Source: Zygnema circumcarinatum SAG 698-1b (taxonomy: Eukaryota; Plantae; Zygnematophyceae). Taken from it: a stretch of DNA of 64,000 bases. The translations under genes and the position numbers were made by a program. Positions within the stretch are counted from its first letter, which is position 1; the number at the start of each line of letters is the position of its first letter. The stretch is from positions 1,890,518 through 1,954,517 of the forward strand of contig CM074822.1 of the NCBI GenBank assembly GCA_037447605.1, written 5' to 3'. This document shows, one piece after another, positions 5,769-57,739 of the stretch. The notes beneath the pieces are model-generated. The model saw nothing but the letters and a program-made list of their open reading frames with translations, was not told the DNA's origin and made no database searches.

Positions 5769-6048
5769 CGGAGCCGGCGGGTTGCCGCCGCCGATGCCCT
5801 TTTTCCCGCGCCCAGCCCGCGCTGCCCGTTCTCTTGCCCGTGCCCCAAAACGTTTCCCGGGCAGGCTGCCCGCGGCCGCATTGAGTGCCCGGTCCCGGGC
5901 GCGGTGCCGCCCGCCAGCTGGCGCCGTCGCGTCCACATGGCGGCGCGGCGCGCACAAGGCAGGCAGCGCCCCGCGGCCGCCACCGGACGCCCTCCTCCCT
6001 CCCTCCCTCCCTCCCTCCCTCCCTCCCTCCNNNNNNNNNNCCCCCGCC

Positions 6049-40827: not shown

Positions 40828-41165
40828 TGTAGCGTAACGGAGCTGCGTTCGACGGATCCGCGCCCGTTCAGTTGTACTTGACATGTTCATATTCAGTGTC
40901 ACGGACCGGCCTGATCCAGGAATTGCCGACGGAAAATGCGAGACGGCGGCGCCATTTGTTGGCGGCCCACGGGACAGCACACCATCCAGCTAGGCGCACT
41001 NNNNNNNNNNGTGTGCTGTTCCGTGGGCCGCCAACGCATGGCGCCGCCTTCTCTCAATCTCCGTTGGCAGCTCCTGGATTCCGTTGATCCGTGACACGGA
41101 AGAGGCATATGTCAAGTACAATTGAACTGACGCAAATCCGTCGAAGGCAGCTCCGTTACGCTACA
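40828..41165. mobile_element. Foldback MITE with ~155-bp TIRs
   Basis: TGTAGCGTAACGGAGCTGC...GGGACAGCACAC / GTGTGCTGTTCC...GCAGCTCCGTTACGCTACA; N10 gap at the centre; a solo arm at 52903-53075; no TSD seen. Confidence 0.8.
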
Positions 41166-44790: not shown

Positions 44791-47700
44791 ATGAGCTCTG
44801 CGCGGCGCGCGTCGCGAGGCGGCGCCGAGAGGAGCGGTGGAAGTCGGCGTGGGGGCGCCGCTGGGGCCGATGCGCCAGCTCTCTTCCCGCCCATGCATGT
44901 CGCCCACGCCGCAGGACCGGGCTCGGGGCCCCGCGCTCCTCCCAGGAATAAAATGGCGCTCTACGAGCATGTTACCACGCCGTCCAAACGCGCTCGGCCT
45001 TATTGGGGGCCAACTTCAACGATGCAGGCCGACAGTGCAGGACTTCAGACTCTGGACCTCCATGGGATACGCACAGACGCTGTTCTCTCGGTAAGCTCTC
45101 TCTCACGGCGGACGGAGCCGCACAGGCTTGTGCTGGTTGAACCGAGATGTGGTTCGGCCAGACTAGGAGTCTGTTCGCTGTTCTTTGGAACGATGGGCAA
45201 CCAGAGGAAGGTGGCGTGGGTAGAAAGCGAGGAACGTTGTCGCATAACCGCCATTGGCTGTCTTTTCTAAACGTCCTTGCCGGACTGCGTCAACTTCAGG
45301 CATGTCGTTGGAACTCGCTCTGATAATACAGAGTTCACAATCTCTTTCTATTTACAACGAGTTTATCGATGCTCTTTTGTTGAGAATACTTAGGACGGAA
45401 AAATGATTGGGAGATACGTTCCACTAAGTTATGAGGTTGTATAACCGGATGTCGAGGGCTCATGAAGCCCACAATATGCTCTGCACCAATCGTGAAAGCC
45501 CTGCCGAGCCATATGGCGGCAGAGCTTGCTTTGGGTCTGCTCGACTTCAGTCAAGTTCCACTTGCTTTCGGTCTTTGATGTCCTGAATATCAGTTCCTGT
45601 TGTATGCGATTGCAAGATCTTATGCAGGCCCCACTTGGATCTGTTTGACTTGTTGCTTTCCTGCACGCATGGCTGCCTCTGCACAGATGCAACAGTTTCG
45701 AACTTATGAGAGCCGATTCTCATATCCTTCATACTTTGGGCAGTCTGCCCCGAACAGCGGTGCCGTTGTAGGATCAGCTCCAGCTTTTCCCGGGATTTGG
45801 CACAGGCAGGCCTCTGGAGGCAGCAACGCTAGCTGTCTGCAGGACTCGTTAGACAGAGAAGTACCCTGCATGCCTTACAGGCTTCCTGGCCAACATTTTG
45901 CTCGGCAAGAAGTCGCACAGCCGTTGAGGAGCACCATCGGCGAAAAGCACAAAATGTCTGTGAACGCCTTAAGTGTAAGAACGGGCGATTCCATTGTGGT
46001 GGACGCATCGGACGGCAGAATCAGAGCAGATGGCCGAGGCATGCGTGCTCTTACAGACGAAAGGCTTGTGCGGGATACTAGCGGTGAAGGCAGTGGGCCA
46101 GCGTCTTCGCCTGCAACTTCAGAGAAATGGGCTTTTATGGCATGGCAACAGCGACAGTGTATGAAACCCCAAGTAGAGAAGGCTTCATCATCATATGTGC
46201 CAGTTGGTGAGCTAGCACTTTCAGGTGCTACTCCAGGTTCCGGAAAGTCCGTGAAGGGGCACGCAGAAGGATTTCCTGGCTTGAAGTCAGCCGCAATAAA
46301 GCCAGCAGTTAGGAACCTTCCAGGTGGAGGGTTTCCTTCCGGTTTTGATTCTGAAGGACCCTCTGAGATTGTAGAGGTGCGCTCAGTTTGCGCATCCGTC
46401 CAGGGTGAGACTGGGTCTGTTCACGGAGGTCTTGACTCTCGAGTAGGAGTACTTCGAAAGCAGTCGCAGTTCGTGCAGCCTCTGGAGAATTCTTTCTGTT
46501 CTGCTGGTGCTCCCACGGCTAGTGACATCACAGGGGCTGCATTACCGTCAGCAGATGTTCAATGGAAATTTTACACTGCGGAGCGAGGAAATGCAAACAA
46601 GGTGGCCTCTCATTCGGGTGCTTGCATGAAAGAAGGGGAAGTGGGTGAAGGGGGTCATGTTCGTCCGAGAGTGCCTCGAGCTAGTGACGAAGAGCATGAC
46701 TGCATTAGCCGGAAGCACCCAAGAGGACAATGCGGGGGGCAGTACGACGTTGAGGAGAGGAGGGAGCAGGGCCCTGATGGTTCGAAGAATGCGGACGAGG
46801 ATCAGAGAGCGCGAGAGCAATCTGGTGCAGTGAGAAGTGACGCGGAAGCCGCCAGGCAAGCAGAGAAGTGCCCCATGGCAAGAAGTCCGGACGTTTCCGA
46901 AGAGACTAGCGGGGAGAGTGGTGGTGGTTTGTCAGAACAGTCACCTCCTGCAGGAGGGGATGCAGCGGACGGAGACAATGAGGATGTGGAGAGGAGACGA
47001 ATGGTCATGCCCATGGATGTAGTGACAGCCATAGGACAGCAGGAATTTTGGAAAGCGAGAAAGACCATTCTCAGGTACATCCTGCTGCTGGCTTTGAATT
47101 GATTTGTGCGTGTCCTTCGATACGTTAGCACGGCCGTTTGTCTAGTTTTCATGTTCGCAGTCCCCTTGAGTTTACGCCGCCATCACTTTCCTGGCAGCAA
47201 AAAGTTTCAAATAACTTCCTTCTACTTCGGACCTTCACTGAAAATGTTTTCTTTTAGATATCTTTTCCGTGGCCTTGTGTTGTGGTACCTTCCCTTCTCC
47301 TAGGTCGAGTTATAGGGAGGCTCACCCTGAAGCCTCTTGTTAGAGAATACTTCGTTCGAACCTTTTGCAGGGTACTACAAGCTATGGTAGGGGAATTGCT
47401 CATTATCTGTTTAGTGTCATTACTATGGCGGGTTGGCCTGCAGACAACAGAGAATTTTCACAGCGCAGGTGTTTGAACTACATCGTATCATCAAGGTATT
47501 GCACCCTTTTTGTACATTTTCCTGCATTTGCTGGCATGCAATTACCTTCATGTTTGCTTTATTGGCCCTTGCAGGCACACTTTTTGGTTGTGTTGTTGAC
47601 CAGTGAAGTCATTGCTTTGGCCCGTGTGCAGGTTCAAGCGGAATTAGCTCTCAAGGAAATTCCAGCTTGGATGGACACAGCGGATGGATTAGGACCATCC

Positions 47701-49188
47701 ATTCGACCAATGGGAGTCACCGAGGCAGCTCTGGCAGTTAATGGTCTGACCTCGTCCGAGGCCTTGACTCTTGCAGCCCAACGTGTCGGTGAAGAAGCAT
47801 CAAAACTTATGGCACAGAGAAGACAGCAACGGCAAGCCAGCCCTGATGACTCTCCTCTTTCTAGCTCCGATGGAGCTGCTAAGGAGCTCTGCAGTGTGCC
47901 ATCAGCCGCAATGCCCCGCCCTGGGACAGGCCCTGGCCCGCCTACCTCCACAGCAGTACCTTCTGCGCCCCAATTCTGGTCCTATCCTCCGTACTCAGCC
48001 ATGCTTCAGCTTCCACAGCAGGCTGCGGCGGTGGCTGTGGCGGCCATTGCGCCATGGCTGCCGCCGATGCCGCCTCGGATGCCGCCAAGTGCGGCGGCAG
48101 CAGCTGCGGCGGCAGCGGCAGCGGCGGCATTTGCGTACGGCCCGTACGGCCAGATGTACGGCGCAGGTGTCCAGGGGGGGGGCTACTCCACCATGTACAC
48201 GTCTGCAGGAGCGCAGCCAGGGATAGTTGTCCAGCCACAGTTAATGGATGTGGGGGTTCCGCAGATTGGAGGGATGAATGGGAATTATTTAGATAGCCGG
48301 CAGGAGCTTTATCCTGGAGTTGGTAAAGCAGAATGGCAAGGAAAGACCGGCGGCGGTGGGTTCAACTCTGATCCTATGGCTGCTTGGTACGCCCTCCCTA
48401 GCTCACATGCTCAGCTAGCGAGTCACGGTGGAGTCGGATGCTTTGACGGTCTGGCAACAGCTGCTGGTGGACTCCCTCTCCCTCTCGTCCCTTTTCAACG
48501 TGTGAACGCAAGTGCTGTACCTAACAACTTAGAGAGCATGCCTTTGTCAGCTTCAAAAGGCATGGCTCAGCCGCTGCATCTTGCGTTTGACGAGGACATG
48601 TCCCATGGGCCTGTGGCTGAGTCTGCCAGCAGAAAGTTTCCAGCCGGGCAGGCAGATAGGAATCGATTGCCTGTGGAGGAATCGGAGGGGAGTCCGTGTG
48701 ATAGCCCGTCCTCAGGCGGTCAGCCACAGGGAGCTGTGCACGATTGGGCGCATGGGTGGGGCCCAAGCTTGCGTCGCCAGCAAATGTCGACCTCGGAGTT
48801 AAGAGACCGGCAGAGGGAAGCAGCGGATATTGCAGATGAGGAATTCGGAAGAGGGACAGATGTGCACGGGAGTGAAGGAGGTGGAGGGTTTCATGGGGCC
48901 GGCGGGCAGGAGCCTGGACGTAAAGGTCGCTTGGCAGGAAAAGGGCACCAACAGATGGCGGCAGGTGAAGGCAGTAAAGTGGGGAAGCGAGCATCGTCTG
49001 CCGAGCTGCAGCTCTTTCCTCTGCAGCCTCTGCGCTCGTCTTTGGGCGGCGGAAATGCAGACGAGCGCTCAACAGCCGCCGGGCGGGCTACCTCCTCTGT
49101 TATCAAAGTCGTGCCCCGTGCTGCCGCAGCAACACCTGAGAGTACTGCCGGCATCTTGCTGTCCATACAGAAGCAGCGGCAAAGGTAG
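44791..49188 (+). CDS. ELF3: EARLY FLOWERING 3 homolog (evening complex scaffold)
   Basis: LFPPMHV...GPRAPPRNKMALYEHVTTPSKR; PMDVVTAIGQQEFWKARKTILR|QQRIFTAQVFELHRIIK|VQAELA; C-terminal IKVVPRAAAATPESTAGILLSIQKQRQR*. Confidence 0.92.
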
Positions 49189-50454: not shown

Positions 50455-52236
50455 TCATTCTGCCTTCTTCTTCGTCTGTTTCTCTGAGGCCAAGCCATAT
50501 GCTGCAACCTTTACAAGAATACGCAGTAGGGTGTACAACACAAGCACCATTGCTGCATAGACTGAATACACATCTACATTGTAGCGCTCCACAAAAGACA
50601 TATAATTGTCCGGCATAATCCAGTGGCTGCTGCTGCCCGTCTCTAGCAGATATGCGACCACTTCCGCCCCTCGCCGGACACCACCTTGGAGTCGCATCAA
50701 CTTTCCGAGCTGCTTGGCTCTCAGGACATAACTGCTTTCTGTCTCACCGCCGGATTTGGAGCCTCCATTGACATCTCCCTTATCTCCAGCGAGCTTGTTC
50801 AGCGCCTCTGTGACAATCTCAGGCGTCAAACTGTCCACATCAAGGCTGACTCCTGCCCCCGAGTCACGCAGCCTTGCAGCAAGCTCGGGCTGGTCAGCCA
50901 TGACTGGAATGCAGACCATCGGCTTGCCAAAGTAGATGGCCTCATGAGTGCCACCAAAGCCGCAGTGCCCGACAAACACCTGCACAGCACGGTGATCCAA
51001 AACCGCCCTCTGGGGCAGCCATAGCTCCAGCCTCAGTCGCTTGTGTGGCTTGTCTGCAAAGCCTTCCGGCAAAAACTCGCGGTTATCAGCGCGAAGCGAC
51101 CACAGCACCGGCCTTCCCGACGATTCCAGACCGTTGAACAGAGCGGTGCCCTGCTTGACGGACAGCCTGGCATGGCTTCCCATGCTGACAACTGTGACAG
51201 TCTGATTTGGCCACTGATCGAGCCACGCATGGAGTTCCGGATTTTTCTCCAGGGGGGAGGGCCCAGCGACCTCCCTACCAGGAGGAGGGTAGATGAGTGG
51301 CCCCGTGTAAACAACCATGGGAGGGGTGGGAATGGCGTAGTCAAAGCCCACCACTGTGTTCACCAGCTTAGGCCGCAGCACGCCTGGCTCGGGGTACTCC
51401 GTCACCGTCATGTTGCATTTGCACTTCTTCTGCAGCTTGGTGGTCGCGAGTCTGTACGCGAAGTGATGCGCCCAGTAGTGGCCATCAAGCTTGTACCACA
51501 ACACGCTGAAGAGTCGATCCCGGAAGGTCATTTCCTTAAGACCTCTAGGTGCCGAATGAATGGGGTAGTGGAAGGGGGGGGGAGGCATGGGGTCCCAGAC
51601 AAGCTGCGGGGAGTTGTACAGCAGTGGAATGTCATACTTCTGCGCAATGTACTCCCCTGTCTGCACAGACGTGAAGTGGTTGGCTAAGACGATATCCGGC
51701 TTCATAGAGAAGGGCTGTCCGGCATGATCCTTTCCCACGAGGCCGTGCTCTTGGATCATACCCTCCTGCAGCATGGACCATAGCATGAGCGCGTCGTTGC
51801 TGTAGAATTCCGAGCGCGCACGCACCATCATAGTGAACGTGCTCACAGTACGCGTGCTCCACCGCGCCGTGTTGCGCTTGCTCACCTCCGACTCGCTCTC
51901 GGGAGCCCCCCCCGTCGGCAAATACACGAGGCCCGTACCGTCGATGATGCGGCCGGGCATTTTGGGGCTCACGTACGGCGCGGCGAGGTAAACGCTGAAG
52001 CCTCTGTCGAGCAGCTCCTGCCCGAGGGAGATGGTAGGGAAGAGGTGGCCGGAGAGGGACGCGCAGAGGAGGAGGACATTGGCGCCGCTGCTCTTGGAGG
52101 AGAGATCGTGCGCGCCATTGACGCTGGCGCCATCAACGTCTCCATTCACCGCGGAAGAGAGAGCGATAGGGAGCAGCTGGCAGAAGAGAATCGCAGCGCA
52201 AAAAGCTCCGTAGCTCCACATGATCGCAGGCCCCAT
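50455..52236 (-). CDS. UDP-glycosyltransferase (GT1), intronless 593 aa, signal peptide + C-terminal TM + KKxx
   Basis: SGHLFPTISLGQEL, MTFRDRL, VVSMGS, WLPQRAVLDHRAVQVFVGHCGFGGTHEAIYFGKPMVCIPVMADQ, RYNVDVYSVYAAMVLVLYTLL...KKKAE*. Confidence 0.93.
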   Translation of the reverse strand: MGPAIMWSYGAFCAAILFCQLLPIALSSAVNGDVDGASVNGAHDLSSKSSGANVLLLCASLSGHLFPTISLGQELLDRGFSVYLAAPYVSPKMPGRIIDGTGLVYLPTGGAPESESEVSKRNTARWSTRTVSTFTMMVRARSEFYSNDALMLWSMLQEGMIQEHGLVGKDHAGQPFSMKPDIVLANHFTSVQTGEYIAQKYDIPLLYNSPQLVWDPMPPPPFHYPIHSAPRGLKEMTFRDRLFSVLWYKLDGHYWAHHFAYRLATTKLQKKCKCNMTVTEYPEPGVLRPKLVNTVVGFDYAIPTPPMVVYTGPLIYPPPGREVAGPSPLEKNPELHAWLDQWPNQTVTVVSMGSHARLSVKQGTALFNGLESSGRPVLWSLRADNREFLPEGFADKPHKRLRLELWLPQRAVLDHRAVQVFVGHCGFGGTHEAIYFGKPMVCIPVMADQPELAARLRDSGAGVSLDVDSLTPEIVTEALNKLAGDKGDVNGGSKSGGETESSYVLRAKQLGKLMRLQGGVRRGAEVVAYLLETGSSSHWIMPDNYMSFVERYNVDVYSVYAAMVLVLYTLLRILVKVAAYGLASEKQTKKKAE

Positions 52237-52529: not shown

Positions 52530-53075
52530 CGTATCTAAGTATCGTATTGACTATGTTAAATAACATCGTATTGAGAATCGAGCAGAACATTCGTATCGAG
52601 AATCGTACAAAATTATCGTTTTGTATCGTATTCGAATTTTGGAAATATTCCCCAGTCCCAGCCATAGGACTCGGCCTCGTAGCGTCCGTACCGTCCGCGC
52701 GGTGGCGTTACAGTAGGACCCCATCATATTTTCCACATCAACATTTGCGTCACCGATAAATTCGCACCAATTTTGCCGAAACCATTTTTTGTACGGTAAC
52801 TTCGTGTTAGCCGTACAACTCGTACAATTCGTACAATTCGTACTAACCGTACTAGCCGTACTAGCTGTACTAGCCGTCACGGGCTGACGCAAAACTCACC
52901 GATGTAGCGTAGTGGAGCTGCGCTCGACGGATCCGCGTCAGTTCAGTTGTACTTGATATATGCCTCTTCAGAATCACGGATCAGCAGAATCCAGGAGCTG
53001 CCAACGGAGGATGCAAGAAGGCAGTACCATGTGTTGGCGGCCCACGGAACAGCACATCATCCAGCAAGGCGCACT
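52530..53075. mobile_element. Composite foldback-family remnant (TATCG tracts, MULE-internal module, solo MITE arm)
   Basis: 52710-52850 matches 40690-40810, 54300-54440 and rc 42945-43040; 52903-53075 matches the 40828 MITE left arm. Confidence 0.7.
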
Positions 53076-53879
53076 CGGAGCGCCGCAATTTGCCGCCGAT
53101 AGTTGTTAGTTGACCTATCATAAGGCTCCACATCGTCAGCCAGGCCACTCAGTGGTCAGTTGGCCAATCAGAGACTGTCACTACTAAGACTCAGGATTTA
53201 CTGTCAGAGATAGATAGATGGGATGTCAGTGATGCTAGTTTGTCTTTTAGTGCTGGGCTTAGTATTTGTATTTGCTGTGTGGTTTGTTGTCCTGTTCTTC
53301 TTTTCTTCCTCTCAAGCTCCAGCAACAGATGCTAGTACGAGAGAGAAAGAGTTCCACTGCAGAGAGAGAGAGAGAGAGAGTCTTCTTGCTGATAGCATTT
53401 AGACATCCAATTCAGCCCAGCCAGACAAGCATTTCAGTGAGAAGACACTTATATTGTAATGAGAATCCCCAGCCAACCGCTGGCTGGGGTAAGTTTCCAA
53501 GACACACCCTTTTTCTAAGCTGACCTTTGCTGTCTCTATGCCAAGCTCCAAAGTTGCTTTATCCTGCCTTCCATTCCTCCCAATGACCGATGATAACTAG
53601 GAGCCTAGCAAAGAGAATAGCTGAAGAGAGAACAGAAGAAGAGAACCCCCAGGGAAGGGCTCTTTGCGTATCGAGTCCGGCCGCCGGCGGGAACATCTTC
53701 AGGATCCCTACGTCTTCCGCTGCGCGTACCTCTGAATCCCCCGGTTCGTGGCTCTATACTGCAGGCAGACCCACAGCCCCAATCCAACCCTTCATTAGTT
53801 TTAGTATAGATGCACTAGTTGCCGTACAGCACCTTCAGCTAGATCAGCAGTCTCCTCTTAACTCCACTTATCTTGTGCT

Positions 53880-55180
53880 ACACCAATTCTCCCCGCACGT
53901 GCCGCCGTCAGAGGCGCTCGCTCTTCTCCCCTTCTTCTTGGCTTCGATACGATACGGTACGGTACGATACGATACGATATGATACAATACGAAACTCCCC
54001 AATACGGTACTATCCGTACTAGCCATACGAGCTGTAGTAGCCGTTACGGGCTCGAATTTAAACTCTTCGATTTTTCCCGCCCTTGTCGCCGCAAGAGGCC
54101 ACCATAGTGTCAGTTGCCACGATACGATACGGTACGGCGCGATACGATATATCACCAAGCGATACGATACAATACGTACGGACGTACATAAACTCTAACG
54201 TAATACCGTCCGTCTATTGGTAACACAGACCTGATATTTGCCAAAAACAATATTTTCGCCGGATTTTCGCGAAACCCAGGTGGAAAATATGATGGGGTCC
54301 TACTGTACAGTGGGGGGTCCTCGTATTTTCCACCCTGTACAGTGCGCTCCCAAGAAATTCGCCCCGATTTTGCCGAAACCACCTTTTTGTACGGTAACTC
54401 AGTGTTACCCGTACTACTTGTACTATTCGTACTATTCGTACCGACCGTACTATCCGTACTTGTTGTACTAGCCGTTACGGGCTTAAGCAAAACAAACCGA
54501 ATCTTCCCGCACGTGCCGCCGTAAGTGGCGCTCGCTCCTCTCCCCTTCATCTTGGCTTCGATACGACACAATACGATACGACACTACACGATACGTTACG
54601 ATACGTAACGATATGATACGGTATTAGACGATACGATATGTACGGACAAACATGAACTCTAACATAACACCGCCCGCCTATTGATAATACGAACCTTATA
54701 TTTGCAAAATCAATATTTTCGCCCCTTTTTGGCCAATACCATGGCGAAAATATGAGGATCCCCCACTGTAGTGCGTTACGGCGTGGCCCAGAGGGACGTG
54801 CGGACGGCGGCTCCCAGCCGGGGGGGCTCGCGTCATCGCAGGAGATGAATAATCGCACACCACCAGCACCACCACCAGCAGCAGCAGCAGGACACGCGGA
54901 CCAACGGTTGGTTCAGGCTCCCTCCGCGCGATGTGATGTGATGTGATGTGATGTGATGTGCTGCTACCGCACATCGATCGATCGGTGACCTTCGCGGCTG
55001 CTTCGAGCAAAGGAGGGAGGGCTTGAAGCGGTGTTGAGCCTGGGCGTAGCTTCGCGCTCCCTAGCTTGTTTCTGTTGTCCGTAGGTCTTTGGCGGCCAGT
55101 TCCTCGTGGTTTCCCATGATGGTTTTGCCCATGTACATTTGATGGCTTCATCGCCATGCGCGAGGTCAATGCCATTTTCC
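53880..55180. mobile_element. Cluster of duplicated foldback/MULE-internal modules plus a family A copy
   Basis: 53885-53960 resembles 54505-54580; 54120-54300 and 54600-54770 resemble rc 42600-42770; 54965-55175 resembles rc 19263-19490; many CGATA/GTAC tracts. Confidence 0.7.
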
Positions 55181-57739
55181 CAGTATTCTGTCGAAGCTGA
55201 TTTGCAGGCGCACGGTGCTTGTCGTGCGGCGATTCTCCTCCGTCACCTGCTCCCTTTCGCTCTCTCTTCCGAGAAAAAAATAATATGCGTTGAAATTTTG
55301 TTGGTTATTTCTGCTCCCTAAAAGTGATTTGGATCACACAAGATCACGCCATCTAAAGGCACAAGGACAAAGACAATACGTAGAATCAATGTGAACCAGT
55401 CACAGATGATTTTTTATGCTATATTTCGTAGCATATTTGGACATGCCGGCGTATCAAGGAAGTCGAGCCAAAGTACAAATTCAGCGCATTTTCAAAGACA
55501 CCAAACTCCGTATTCGAGAACACTGGTTCAACCAGGAGACCTGGCTGGATATGACCCTCCTTCGTAGGAGTTTCAAATGTCAATGTAGCGCATTCACAAG
55601 TGTGGGTTCCACGATATTGGGAATCATTCAGACGATGGAGCCGTCTGACCTAGATTTTAGCCGTACAAGATTTCAATTGGTGACGAGATAGATATTCAAG
55701 TGAAGAAGGAATGGATATTTGCTGTTCAAGGTGGTTGAATGGTTGAATTCGACTTGGTGATGAGATGCTGACTGCGGAATTATTGAGACGTTGAGACGTT
55801 CAACTTTTCTAAAGGTCAGTTTAGAATTGGTAAAAGGTAATGGCAATCACCAATTAAAATGGCAACCCATTCCAAACCTTTGAACTGGATTGTATTTGTA
55901 GAAAAAAAAAATAGCCAGCATGTACAAATGCTCAAACTGGTTAGCTCTCCTGTGCATACTTCCGTTCCGTTAAGTAAACGGTACCGCATGGCCGTTGCAC
56001 GGCAGAGAGCAAAGTAAGACCTGCAGCACATGGCAGACGAACTCCGCACTCCTACAGTAGAGTACACAGGCCGGCTCAGAGACCAATGCTGGCCGATCAT
56101 ATCACAGAAGAACTGCGACTTGGCTGTTCCGAGCCGCGACAGGGTCCACGACCACCAGAGTTCCCCAAAAGCTTCTCATCCATTCATGCACTCAGCTCGC
56201 GAGGGTTTGAGACATTTTCAAAGCCACAGTACACGTGCCATGGTTTGCATCGCAGAGGTCCCTTGCATACGCCACACTGGTACACAGGTGACAGCCCCTT
56301 TTCGCAGAGAACAGCGGGCGTTGGCACACCACGCAGAATGCATCTCATCAGGCGGACAGCCAATGCCCGGACAGTAGATAAGCAAAGCCGCAACATAGCA
56401 AGACAAGGCTTTTACAATCATTTCATTTATGGGAGTCGCCCGCATTACAATTTTCCCGATGTCCGCACTGGGTTTGCTAAAGCCTCTTCCCCCCCCCCCC
56501 CCCCCCCCCCCCNNNNNNNNNNCTTCCCCCCCCCCCCCCCGACCTTGACCTTGAAGGAGACCTTGCTGCCCCTCACTAGAACAAACACAGCCGCCAGTTG
56601 TTGTGGCCTTGCCATTCCGCAGGTGCCAGGACGCCAGCGGCAATGTGATTTGACAGCATGCCCTCGGAATATCAGCAGAAAGCGAGTGAGAGTTCAACGG
56701 CTGCAAACGGCTCGTTAATTCCTGAATCCTTATGAACTTCACATGCTTGTCAGCTGCAGCTCAAACCACGAAAATCCTAGAGCGAATGGCAATTGACATG
56801 ACAACGAACTTATTCCTTCACAATATAAAATCATGTGAACACGGGAATGTATAAAATACAAACATGCAGAATGAAAACGTGAGACACCGAATCAGGCAGA
56901 CCTACCCCTATCAGTGACAAGCGCGATGAAGCAAGCTGACAAAGCTGATCGCTAAATCAACAGGCATGACTCTTGAGCCAGAGAAGCCTGAGTGGACTCA
57001 CCATAGACAAGCGTGGATCCGACTTGACTGAACCAGCACATGGAACTCCTCATCAACGGTATATTCCGCACATGCTCCACGCAATGCCCTGGAATGTCAA
57101 TCACAGAACAAATCAAGAAAGAGAAGCAGAGAATAGAGGGCTCAGGTCACGAAAGTGAACGAGTGAGAAAACAATCCACACATCGCAAGGCTTACGGACG
57201 CCTGACTGTCATTGCTTCAAATGGCACCATTCAGCCATGAGTGGACAGATGGTTTCCTATCAAGAGAGCAAAAAATTGCTCTGAGCAGAGCCACTAGCAG
57301 GCAGGGTCAATGTCCGTCGGACTACCCAGTCCGTGGCAGGGCCGCTCATGGCGCATGCCTGCCGGGGCTACCATGCAGCACTCCACCAAATACTGCATGG
57401 CATCTCAATGCAATCAGATGGACAAATGATGCTCTCCATCCGGGCACATCGAGAGTACCAAATGTGGCGAAAATTATGAAATTTATGATCTGCGATTGAT
57501 CAAAATATATCTTCCGCGGCTACAAACAGCTAAACGAGCTGTGGGCTTGAGGGAAAAAGAAGACCTCCAGTTCACTAACAACAGTGGAACTAAGAGAATT
57601 TGCTTTGATCTCAACATGGCGATGCCATCAGATGTACATGAACAACAGTGAAACTTCATGAGAAAGACAAGCAAAAAAAATTCAGAGAAACTTTAAGAAT
57701 TGCAGCAATCGTACACAAGTAGATAACCTGGATCAGCAA

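Follow-up and report, generated by a model that had tools for sequence, protein, structure and literature searches.

Plant UDP-glycosyltransferases (UGTs) are soluble cytosolic enzymes, while those of animals are ER-luminal and membrane-bound. A gene in the 64,000-nucleotide window of Zygnema circumcarinatum SAG 698-1b analysed here (the window; part of contig CM074822.1) was described in a sequence-only reading as an animal-type, ER-anchored UGT. This raises two questions: whether a streptophyte alga indeed encodes a UGT of this kind, and where such a gene comes from. We consider it probable that the locus encodes a functional type-I ER membrane UDP-glycosyltransferase of an undescribed zygnematophycean clade, sister to a sponge-containing clade of UGTs.

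The gene (Table 1) starts with an ATG, is preceded by an in-frame stop codon 18 nt upstream and is the sole long open reading frame (ORF) at its place. As first read, it is an intronless 593-aa GT1 gene: the UDPGT frame is uninterrupted, collinear with its homologues and free of gaps that would hint at an intron. No assembly gap lies inside or adjoining it, the nearest N runs being at 41001 and 56513. The gene is intact and under purifying selection, with a dN/dS of ~0.1 for the UGT clade over the entire length, where dS is unsaturated. Its surroundings were less distinctive. The transposable element remnants of the earlier reading were confirmed in part: upstream, at 52.7-54.7 kb, there are arrays of short units and modules duplicated in dispersed copies, none with an identified transposon domain. 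A Pfam scan of eight ORFs neighbouring the UGT gene gave no match, neither to ELF3 nor to a transposon; two long plus-strand ORFs at 45600-49188 have no Pfam match, and ELF3 as a neighbour was not confirmed.

The protein is a CAZy GT1 enzyme with a GT-B fold. Pfam UDPGT (PF00201) matches it with an E-value of 2e-27 (96.6 bits against a cut-off of 19.5), and the AlphaFold model (pLDDT 79.5, pTM 0.76) places a GT-B core between terminal helices at residues 2-27 and 554-586. Foldseek aligned this model to many GT1 structures with a probability of 1.00, the best being NbUGT72AY1, OleI, TuUGT202A2 and YojK (E ~1e-19 to 1e-20). These best four are small-molecule GT1 enzymes.

Table 1. Features of the UGT gene and its product, in positions of the window. 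A1, alignment of seven clade sequences (down to 42% identity); A2, alignment with outgroup UGTs included.
Feature	Position	Strand	Basis
Complete single-exon CDS, membrane-anchored GT1 UDP-glycosyltransferase	50455..52236	-	593 codons + stop
Putative N-terminal signal peptide, residues 1-29	52150..52236	-	Hydropathy; predicted helix 2-27, then low-confidence linker
N-terminal (acceptor-side) Rossmann-like half of GT-B fold, residues 50-330	51247..52089	-	Model; query 48-574 aligned full-length with outgroup UGTs
His64, GT1 catalytic base position (S-G-H-L-F-P)	52045..52047	-	His in 88/92 non-gap rows of family alignment
Asn186 in column of GT1 catalytic-dyad Asp, then His187	51679..51681	-	Family alignment; end of predicted strand 182-186
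MTFRDRL motif, residues 236-242	51511..51531	-	Translation; M236, F238, D240, R241 invariant in A1
C-terminal UDP-sugar-binding half of GT-B fold, residues 331-490	50767..51246	-	Pfam and PDB matches; model
UGT donor-binding signature W..Q....H-C-G..G..E....D-Q, residues 406-449	50890..51021	-	Conserved W406, Q409, H424, G426, E432, D448, Q449
RYNVDV juxtamembrane motif, residues 551-556	50569..50586	-	Directly before anchor; D555 and V556 invariant in A1 and A2
Single C-terminal transmembrane helix, residues 557-580, core about 557-572	50497..50568	-	Hydropathy maximum 2.05 (561-579); predicted helix 554-586
Short cytosolic tail, residues 581-593, ending K-K-K-A-E	50458..50496	-	K at -3, -4, -5; canonical KKxx/KxKxx ER-retrieval pattern

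The algal protein shares the GT-B fold and the donor-binding signature with land-plant UGTs of the PSPG type (UGT76G1, UGT72, UGT74, VvGT1), which are soluble and, unlike it, have neither signal nor anchor. Because PSPG-type enzymes prevail among solved structures, they come out best in comparisons with PDB sequences and by Foldseek. Their sequence matches are limited to the C-terminal domain (query 337-488); with this domain alone, the query scored a little better against plant UGTs (78 bits) than against a human UGT2B7 fragment (58.5 bits), a point against our reading. In the maximum likelihood (ML) tree, a branch of 2.3 changes per site leads to the UGT76G1-like representative. Given this distance and its signal-like and transmembrane segments, the algal protein is not a soluble PSPG-type enzyme. 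Bacterial macrolide and antibiotic GT1 enzymes (OleI/OleD, MGT, YjiC/YojK) are alike in fold and C-terminal domain, but lack a signal peptide, an anchor and a dilysine tail, and the NCBIfam scores of the query were all far under the family cut-offs (for MGT, 74 bits against 260).

Topology was assigned from hydropathy, predicted helices and conservation. Kyte-Doolittle (KD) analysis found three hydrophobic stretches: a signal-like one at residues 1-34, one at 53-72 and one at 553-584. The middle stretch, with the catalytic His, forms beta strand 1 of the GT-B fold. The putative signal has an h-region at about 10-27 (KD up to 2.08), and the small residues S-S-A precede the likely cleavage site; the string quoted for it earlier begins at Met6, whereas the ORF begins five residues before. 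A similar hydrophobic N-terminus was present in 5/6 homologues that have an N-terminus in A1, the exception being P0004, an ORF call with an upstream extension of ~70 residues. The hydrophobic N-terminus, the MTFRDRL motif (MTFxDRL in the consensus of A2), RYNVDV with the following transmembrane helix, and the dilysine end were all recovered where the sequence-only reading had seen them, the terminus reading KKKAE in full. The K-x-K-x-x pattern is kept in all seven A1 sequences, with K589 and K591 (-5 and -3) invariant. Among 74 full-length relatives, 64 have the C-terminal transmembrane helix, 49 terminate in a dilysine motif, and 40 combine signal, transmembrane helix and dilysine end. C272, C274, C425 and C442 are invariant, and an N-x-T sequon at N275 occurs in 5/7 clade sequences; judged from sequence, these cysteines and the sequon would fit a luminal domain.

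The layout recurs in metazoan ER UGTs (UGT1/2/3/8 and the sponge UGT-like genes Halichondria panicea 'YjiC-like' and Ephydatia muelleri Em0004g788a), which have in common with the algal protein the N-terminal signal (putative in the alga), the GT-B domain, an MTFxxR-type motif, a Y-x-x-[LV]-D-V motif, one C-terminal transmembrane helix and a K-x-K-x-x tail. The two differ in that identity is ~25-32% with the algal clade separate and deep, that the nucleotide-binding loop reads H-C-G-F-G-G in the algal UGT and H-G-G in most sponge-like sequences, that Asn replaces the dyad Asp, and that the algal host is a photosynthetic streptophyte. The signal-like N-terminus, GT1 domain, transmembrane helix and dilysine end are real and conserved, but 'animal-type' is too narrow a label, because two fungal GT1 enzymes with phenolic substrates, UGT58A1 (Absidia) and UGT59A1 (Rhizopus), are reported to be transmembrane proteins too (PMC10334773); they are likened to the algal UGT by description, neither sequence being in our tree. 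Feature matching in the atlas gave leads in several directions and is to be read as leads only: the nearest large clusters were from Mucoromycota, Nematoda and Ascomycota, and further matches were in Mollusca and Arthropoda. The top-scoring large cluster was a 577-aa Mucoromycota UDPGT, and an arthropod CGT-like cluster at rank 9 (score 0.95) is a lead toward UGT8/ceramide galactosyltransferase.

Homologues were found in other Zygnematophyceae. Eight related proteins, 37-79% identical to the query, conserve the architecture, including one from Netrium digitus and two from Mesotaenium endlicherianum; the sources were two independent transcriptomes (Netrium EP00270 and a second EukProt Trinity assembly), the Mesotaenium genome and three other contigs. 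An exhaustive HMMER search returned five 50%-identity clusters at E<1e-60 (P0001, which is the query's own, P0006, P0007, P0008 and P0009), after which values fell to 1e-43. Species names among these five were those of Netrium (P0006) and Mesotaenium (P0008/P0009) only, and no land-plant orthologue was among them. A word search with a 16-sequence profile alignment yielded seven proteins only; it added one partial Mesotaenium paralogue but left the outgroups without further names. As the features are conserved in these eight relatives, the gene is native to zygnematophycean algae, and its clade is present in three or more of their lineages. The sequence-only reading had counted a broadly conserved streptophyte clade of the same topology against itself; an algal clade with this topology does exist, but it is not broadly streptophyte. 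In open-access papers we found no description of a zygnematophycean membrane-UGT clade, a result that does not by itself prove novelty. The enzyme type is known; its zygnematophycean branch is old and, as far as those papers show, new to the literature.

In the ML tree, the algal clade (support 100/100) is joined (100/98) to a sister clade that contains the Halichondria and Ephydatia genes (100/100), on long stem branches (0.8 and 0.59). "Sister to a metazoan clade" here means two sponge labels, the sole taxon names among the outgroup rows, in a tree built without vertebrate, insect, nematode and Mucoromycota reference UGTs. Members of the sister clade are laid out as UGTs with signal, anchor and dilysine end; one of them, P0014, has human UGT2B15/2B10/2B7 as best match, and at the base of the clade eukaryotic metagenome contigs (the P0019/P0020 group) carry the same layout. 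A further clade attaches outside the algal and sponge-containing pair, in which P0042 is named as an MGT-family GT and P0088 best matches bacterial-type GTs. Cluster look-ups of 20 outgroup representatives yielded one name, 'MGT family glycosyltransferase', which is uninformative as to taxon. The contigs of the outgroup members L004, L005/6, L007 and L008 held no phylum-diagnostic genes, their surroundings being eukaryotic and gene-sparse or transposon-bearing. The proposed affinity to animal enzymes therefore holds in that the nearest non-algal relatives, sponge genes included, share the layout and are not PSPG UGTs; it does not hold in that the algal clade is not nested in labelled animal genes.

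That the gene was recently transferred from an animal, or sits on a contaminant contig, is highly improbable. Its single exon and its GC3 of 0.70, above the 0.46-0.54 of neighbouring long ORFs (whose coding status is putative), would suit such an origin, but homologues on contigs L001 and L003 are high in GC3 as well, the gene and its borders are gap-free, and its closest relatives are algal (42-79% identity, including Netrium and Mesotaenium) while the best non-algal matches are only ~30% identical. Recent transfer was ruled out by the occurrence of the clade in at least three zygnematophycean lineages and by its deep branch outside the sponge-containing clade, and contamination by the algal homologues and the gap-free surroundings. 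Intronlessness, earlier read as a sign of transfer, turned out to be a family trait of these UGTs and no evidence of transfer, because the relatives are single ORFs as well: the algal homologues on L001-L003 and the outgroup genes on L004, L007 and L008 (Mb-size eukaryotic contigs), with the caveat that ORF-based gene calls favour intronless genes. Of the earlier proposal of horizontal acquisition or a clade lost in embryophytes, recent transfer has thus to be dropped, and both an old transfer and loss stand.

An old horizontal transfer from an opisthokont (holozoan-like) or another eukaryote into the ancestor of Zygnematophyceae, followed by vertical inheritance, is a good possibility, if short of an even chance. 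It would account for strongest matches that, apart from Zygnematophyceae, include no land-plant or other named green-lineage member, and for an algal clade that is sister to a sponge-containing one with another clade joining outside, a topology in conflict with the species tree if that outer clade is fungal. Lack of nesting within labelled animal sequences and the long stems speak against it, unlabelled outgroup rows may hide unsampled protist or green members, and a scan of viral contigs for a giant-virus intermediate found none. Codon usage is uninformative on an event of this age. Vertical descent is possible too, though we hold it tentatively: ER-type UGTs would be ancient, with one lineage kept by Zygnematophyceae and lost in embryophytes and most other Archaeplastida. 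The deep, separate position of an algal clade with the full ancestral architecture favours descent, as does the occurrence of the layout in animals, in fungi and in the metagenome contigs basal to the sister clade; against this, many independent losses over green and red lineages would be needed, and no other archaeplastid member was identified among the sparse labels.

Whichever the origin, the active site of the Zygnema protein departs from the usual GT1 pattern. The dyad-Asp column of the family alignment has D in 72 rows, E in 16 and N in 9. It is N in the query and in P0001-P0005, D in Netrium, P0007 and Mesotaenium, and varies in the sister clade as well (E, N, T, A). From sequence, replacement of the usual catalytic Asp by Asn186 may mean reduced or altered activity. 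A protein that is catalytically impaired or repurposed, for example to bind a sugar nucleotide or an acceptor or to act as a partner subunit, is nevertheless improbable: the query and its five closest relatives all have N186 where deeper algal members keep Asp, but His64 and all donor-binding signature residues are retained, variation in the dyad column extends to the sister clade, and the low dN/dS applies across the full length.

For the functional ER enzyme that we favour, the layout suggests the following course. The N-terminal signal would direct the nascent chain into the ER, leaving the GT-B catalytic domain (residues about 50-550) in the lumen and the single C-terminal helix as membrane anchor. 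COPI would read the K-x-K-x-x motif of the cytosolic tail and retrieve the enzyme to the ER. In the lumen, His64 would act as the base in the transfer of sugar from a UDP-sugar to an acceptor, predicted to be a lipid or a lipophilic small molecule.

It is a speculative and rather unlikely extension of this that the ancestor of Zygnematophyceae gained a luminal 'phase II' enzyme in the style of animals and fungi, or was alone in keeping one, and that the enzyme works within the endomembrane system, glycosylating phenolics or lipids bound for the vacuole or the cell surface. Glycosylated phenolic pigments are known from zygnematophytes and are possible substrates in such a reading. If true, these algae would make small-molecule glycosides by a path that does not depend on the cytosolic PSPG UGTs, which expanded later in land plants, and the Zygnema-like subclade would use an unusual His/Asn(-His) catalytic centre. 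In surveys of sequenced green and red algae, GT1 genes were few and none was for glycosylation of small molecules (PMC3797821); the streptophyte alga Klebsormidium has only three UGTs (PMC10513242). The zygnematophycean membrane UGT is a concrete candidate for small-molecule glycosylation in algae. The enzyme type is already well known; the advance lies in its distribution and evolutionary history, together with the questions of the acceptor and of the Asp-to-Asn change, and the clade is well suited to testing gene loss as land plants arose against an old inter-kingdom transfer.

Our starting point was a sequence-only reading in which the UGT gene had been taken to encode a signal-bearing glycosyltransferase with an MTFRDRL motif, a RYNVDV segment running into a transmembrane (TM) helix, and a dilysine end; this description was borne out by the ORF, Pfam, hydropathy and motif positions. 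The gene is the sole long ORF at its locus, with an in-frame stop codon 18 nt upstream of the ATG. Its 593-aa product (the query) scored 96.6 bits on the Pfam UDPGT profile (PF00201), for which the cut-off is 19.5 (E 2e-27), with weaker overlapping matches to GT-B C-terminal families. NCBIfam bacterial GT1 models scored far below their cut-offs, the match being confined to the C-terminal domain. By Kyte-Doolittle hydropathy the N-terminus is hydrophobic (maximum 2.08, in windows within residues 1-34), as is a C-terminal segment (553-584, maximum 2.05); the sole further hydrophobic stretch is the fold's first beta strand. MTFRDRL occupies residues 236-242 and RYNVDV residues 551-556, and the protein ends in K-K-K-A-E.

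Eight scaffold gaps are present in the window (N runs at 6031, 18878, 22734 (100 N), 36089, 37436, 41001, 56513 and 60972), none of them in or immediately beside the UGT gene.

Positions of the UGT gene, neighbouring ORFs and upstream repeats in the window
Feature	Position	Strand	Remarks
UGT ORF	50455-52236	-	593 codons, ATG start
Codons of Asn186 and His187	51679-51684	-	dyad-Asp column and insertion
Neighbour ORF, 500 aa	45600-47102	+	no Pfam match
Neighbour ORF, 607 aa	47365-49188	+	no Pfam match
Partial copy of UGT 5' end	55196-55271	+	inverted, versus 52152-52211
Modules and arrays	52700-54700		upstream of UGT
Module pair	52724-52902 and 54322-54501		inverted, 82% over 181 nt

The layout is shared by the algal homologues. 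In an alignment of the query and six homologues, 7/7 sequences have the TM helix and end in K-x-K-x-x, and neither K589 nor K591 varies. Where homologues have an N-terminus, it is hydrophobic in five of six; the exception, P0004, is an ORF call with a long upstream extension. C272, C274, C425 and C442 are invariant across the algal clade and the N275 sequon is retained in 5/7 sequences, features that would be compatible with a luminal domain. Animal ER UGTs, human UGT1A/2B enzymes among them, are type-I membrane proteins whose catalytic domain faces the lumen and whose dilysine tail serves for retrieval by COPI. The query architecture matches that of animal ER UGTs, and its predicted placement is ER-luminal.

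An AlphaFold2 model of the query, built from a 16-sequence alignment (mean pLDDT 79.5, pTM 0.76), displayed a GT-B core flanked by helices: an N-terminal one (2-27), joined to the core by a disordered linker (26-46), and a long C-terminal one (554-586). The best Foldseek matches in the PDB were small-molecule GT1 enzymes (E ~1e-19 to 1e-20), namely NbUGT72AY1, OleI, a kitacinnamycin GT, TuUGT202A2 of a spider mite and YojK of Bacillus. A family alignment of 116 rows shows conservation of the catalytic His (H64) and of the residues that make up the donor-binding signature (W406, Q409, H424, G426, E432, D448, Q449). The query and the five proteins closest to it have Asn186, followed by an inserted His187, in the dyad-Asp column; Asp is retained in the Netrium, P0007 (a further algal-clade protein) and Mesotaenium sequences. 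Over the 116 rows this column reads D 72, E 16, N 9, T 9 and A 3, and it is variable in the sister clade. Asn186 thus alters the catalytic centre in one lineage; it may reduce or change activity, and we do not take it as evidence of inactivity.

When 5.8 billion proteins were searched by a word-based method, six relatives emerged at 42-79% identity, one of them a Netrium digitus transcriptome protein (EukProt). HMMER, run exhaustively over 1.84 billion cluster representatives, gave 8522 matches, with just five clusters at E<1e-60 and the next at 1e-43; Mesotaenium endlicherianum accounts for two of the five, with gene models ME000184S02197 and ME000013S00780. Together with the query, these members indicate that at least three zygnematophycean lineages carry the family. 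Three homologues are single uninterrupted ORFs on genomic or metagenomic contigs, and one of these adjoins a spliced trehalose-phosphate synthase/phosphatase gene, and therefore lies in a eukaryotic, plant-like context. Given this distribution, a dN/dS of ~0.1 where dS is unsaturated (Nei-Gojobori) and the finding that no N run in the window touches the gene, a contaminant or recent transfer was excluded.

We found no description of this algal clade in the open-access literature. A survey of green and red algal genomes, covering chlorophytes and cyanidiophytes and no streptophyte alga, reported that GT1 genes were few and that none served small-molecule glycosylation (PMC3797821); Klebsormidium was the sole streptophyte alga sampled in a study of Archaeplastida UGTs (PMC10513242), and a study of Serritaenia remarked that its own UGT candidates are unrelated to known flavonoid UGTs (PMC11156808).

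The HMMER search supplied 74 full-length-like representatives. The N-terminus is hydrophobic in 56 of them, a C-terminal TM helix occurs in 64 and a dilysine end in 49; all three features coincide in 40. For many representatives the alignment to the query starts near residue 50 and takes in the juxtamembrane motif (~574); alignment of solved plant UGTs is limited to 337-488. Trees built by FastTree (113 rows), quick IQ-TREE and careful IQ-TREE (LG+C20+F+G4 PMSF, 54 rows; ultrafast bootstrap/SH-aLRT) were mutually consistent on UGT placement. In the careful tree the algal clade was monophyletic (100/100), with a large clade of signal-TM-dilysine UGTs as its sister (100/100; union of both 100/98); a further clade joined outside this union (100/99), and the plant-type clade was separated by a branch of 2.3 changes per site. 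Taxon labels are sparse, and no row is labelled as a UGT from a vertebrate, an insect, a nematode or Mucoromycota; the labelled sister-clade members are sponge proteins, from Halichondria panicea and Ephydatia muelleri. The best matches of P0014, also of the sister clade, were the C-terminal domains of human UGT2B15, 2B10 and 2B7. In the outer clade, P0088 was closest to bacterial-type GTs and P0042 is named MGT-family glycosyltransferase, and the far-outgroup P0024 is UGT76G1-like (E 1e-88 to 1e-116). The nearest large atlas clusters of the query are from Mucoromycota, Nematoda, Ascomycota, Mollusca and Arthropoda. The clade with labelled animal genes does not contain the algal clade, which falls outside it. 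The earlier label "animal-type" fits the layout, but is too narrow because fungal UGT58A1 and UGT59A1 are likewise transmembrane (PMC10334773).

An old transfer into the zygnematophyte stem is about as likely as an ancient eukaryotic lineage that embryophytes and other Archaeplastida have lost. Intronlessness, previously read as a sign of transfer, does not discriminate between them, because algal homologues and outgroup signal-TM-dilysine UGTs are also single ORFs, the latter (L007:10001-11530, L008:10001-11584 and L004:6001-7536) on eukaryotic contigs of up to 8.6 Mb. Genes with a single exon thus seem to be common throughout this branch of the family, with the caveat that they are favoured by ORF-based gene calling. 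GC3 is 0.70 in the UGT gene versus 0.46-0.54 in adjacent long ORFs, themselves only putatively coding, and high GC3 is common to two of three homologues compared. A viral-contig scan found no viral intermediate.

Upstream of the UGT gene lie dispersed duplicated modules and arrays of 5-nt (CGATA) and 9-nt (GTACTANCC) units, and no transposon protein domain was found in this segment; the TE remnants of the sequence-only reading are only partly borne out. On the other side of the gene, the two plus-strand ORFs of 500 and 607 aa gave no Pfam match, and the neighbour's assignment to ELF3 in that reading is putative. An inverted partial copy of the signal-peptide-coding 5' end (60 nt, 83% complementary) is located 3 kb upstream; within a short ORF it encodes a similar hydrophobic stretch (14/25 residues identical) and diverges beyond. 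A local inverted duplication may have left this remnant, or it may represent exon 1 of a divergent gene that has borrowed the signal.

Acceptor and sugar are not readable from the UGT sequence. Most likely, this putative enzyme would act in the lumen, glycosylating a lipid or lipophilic small molecule with an imported UDP-sugar, and we speculate that it is tied to the glycosylated vacuolar phenolics of zygnematophytes.
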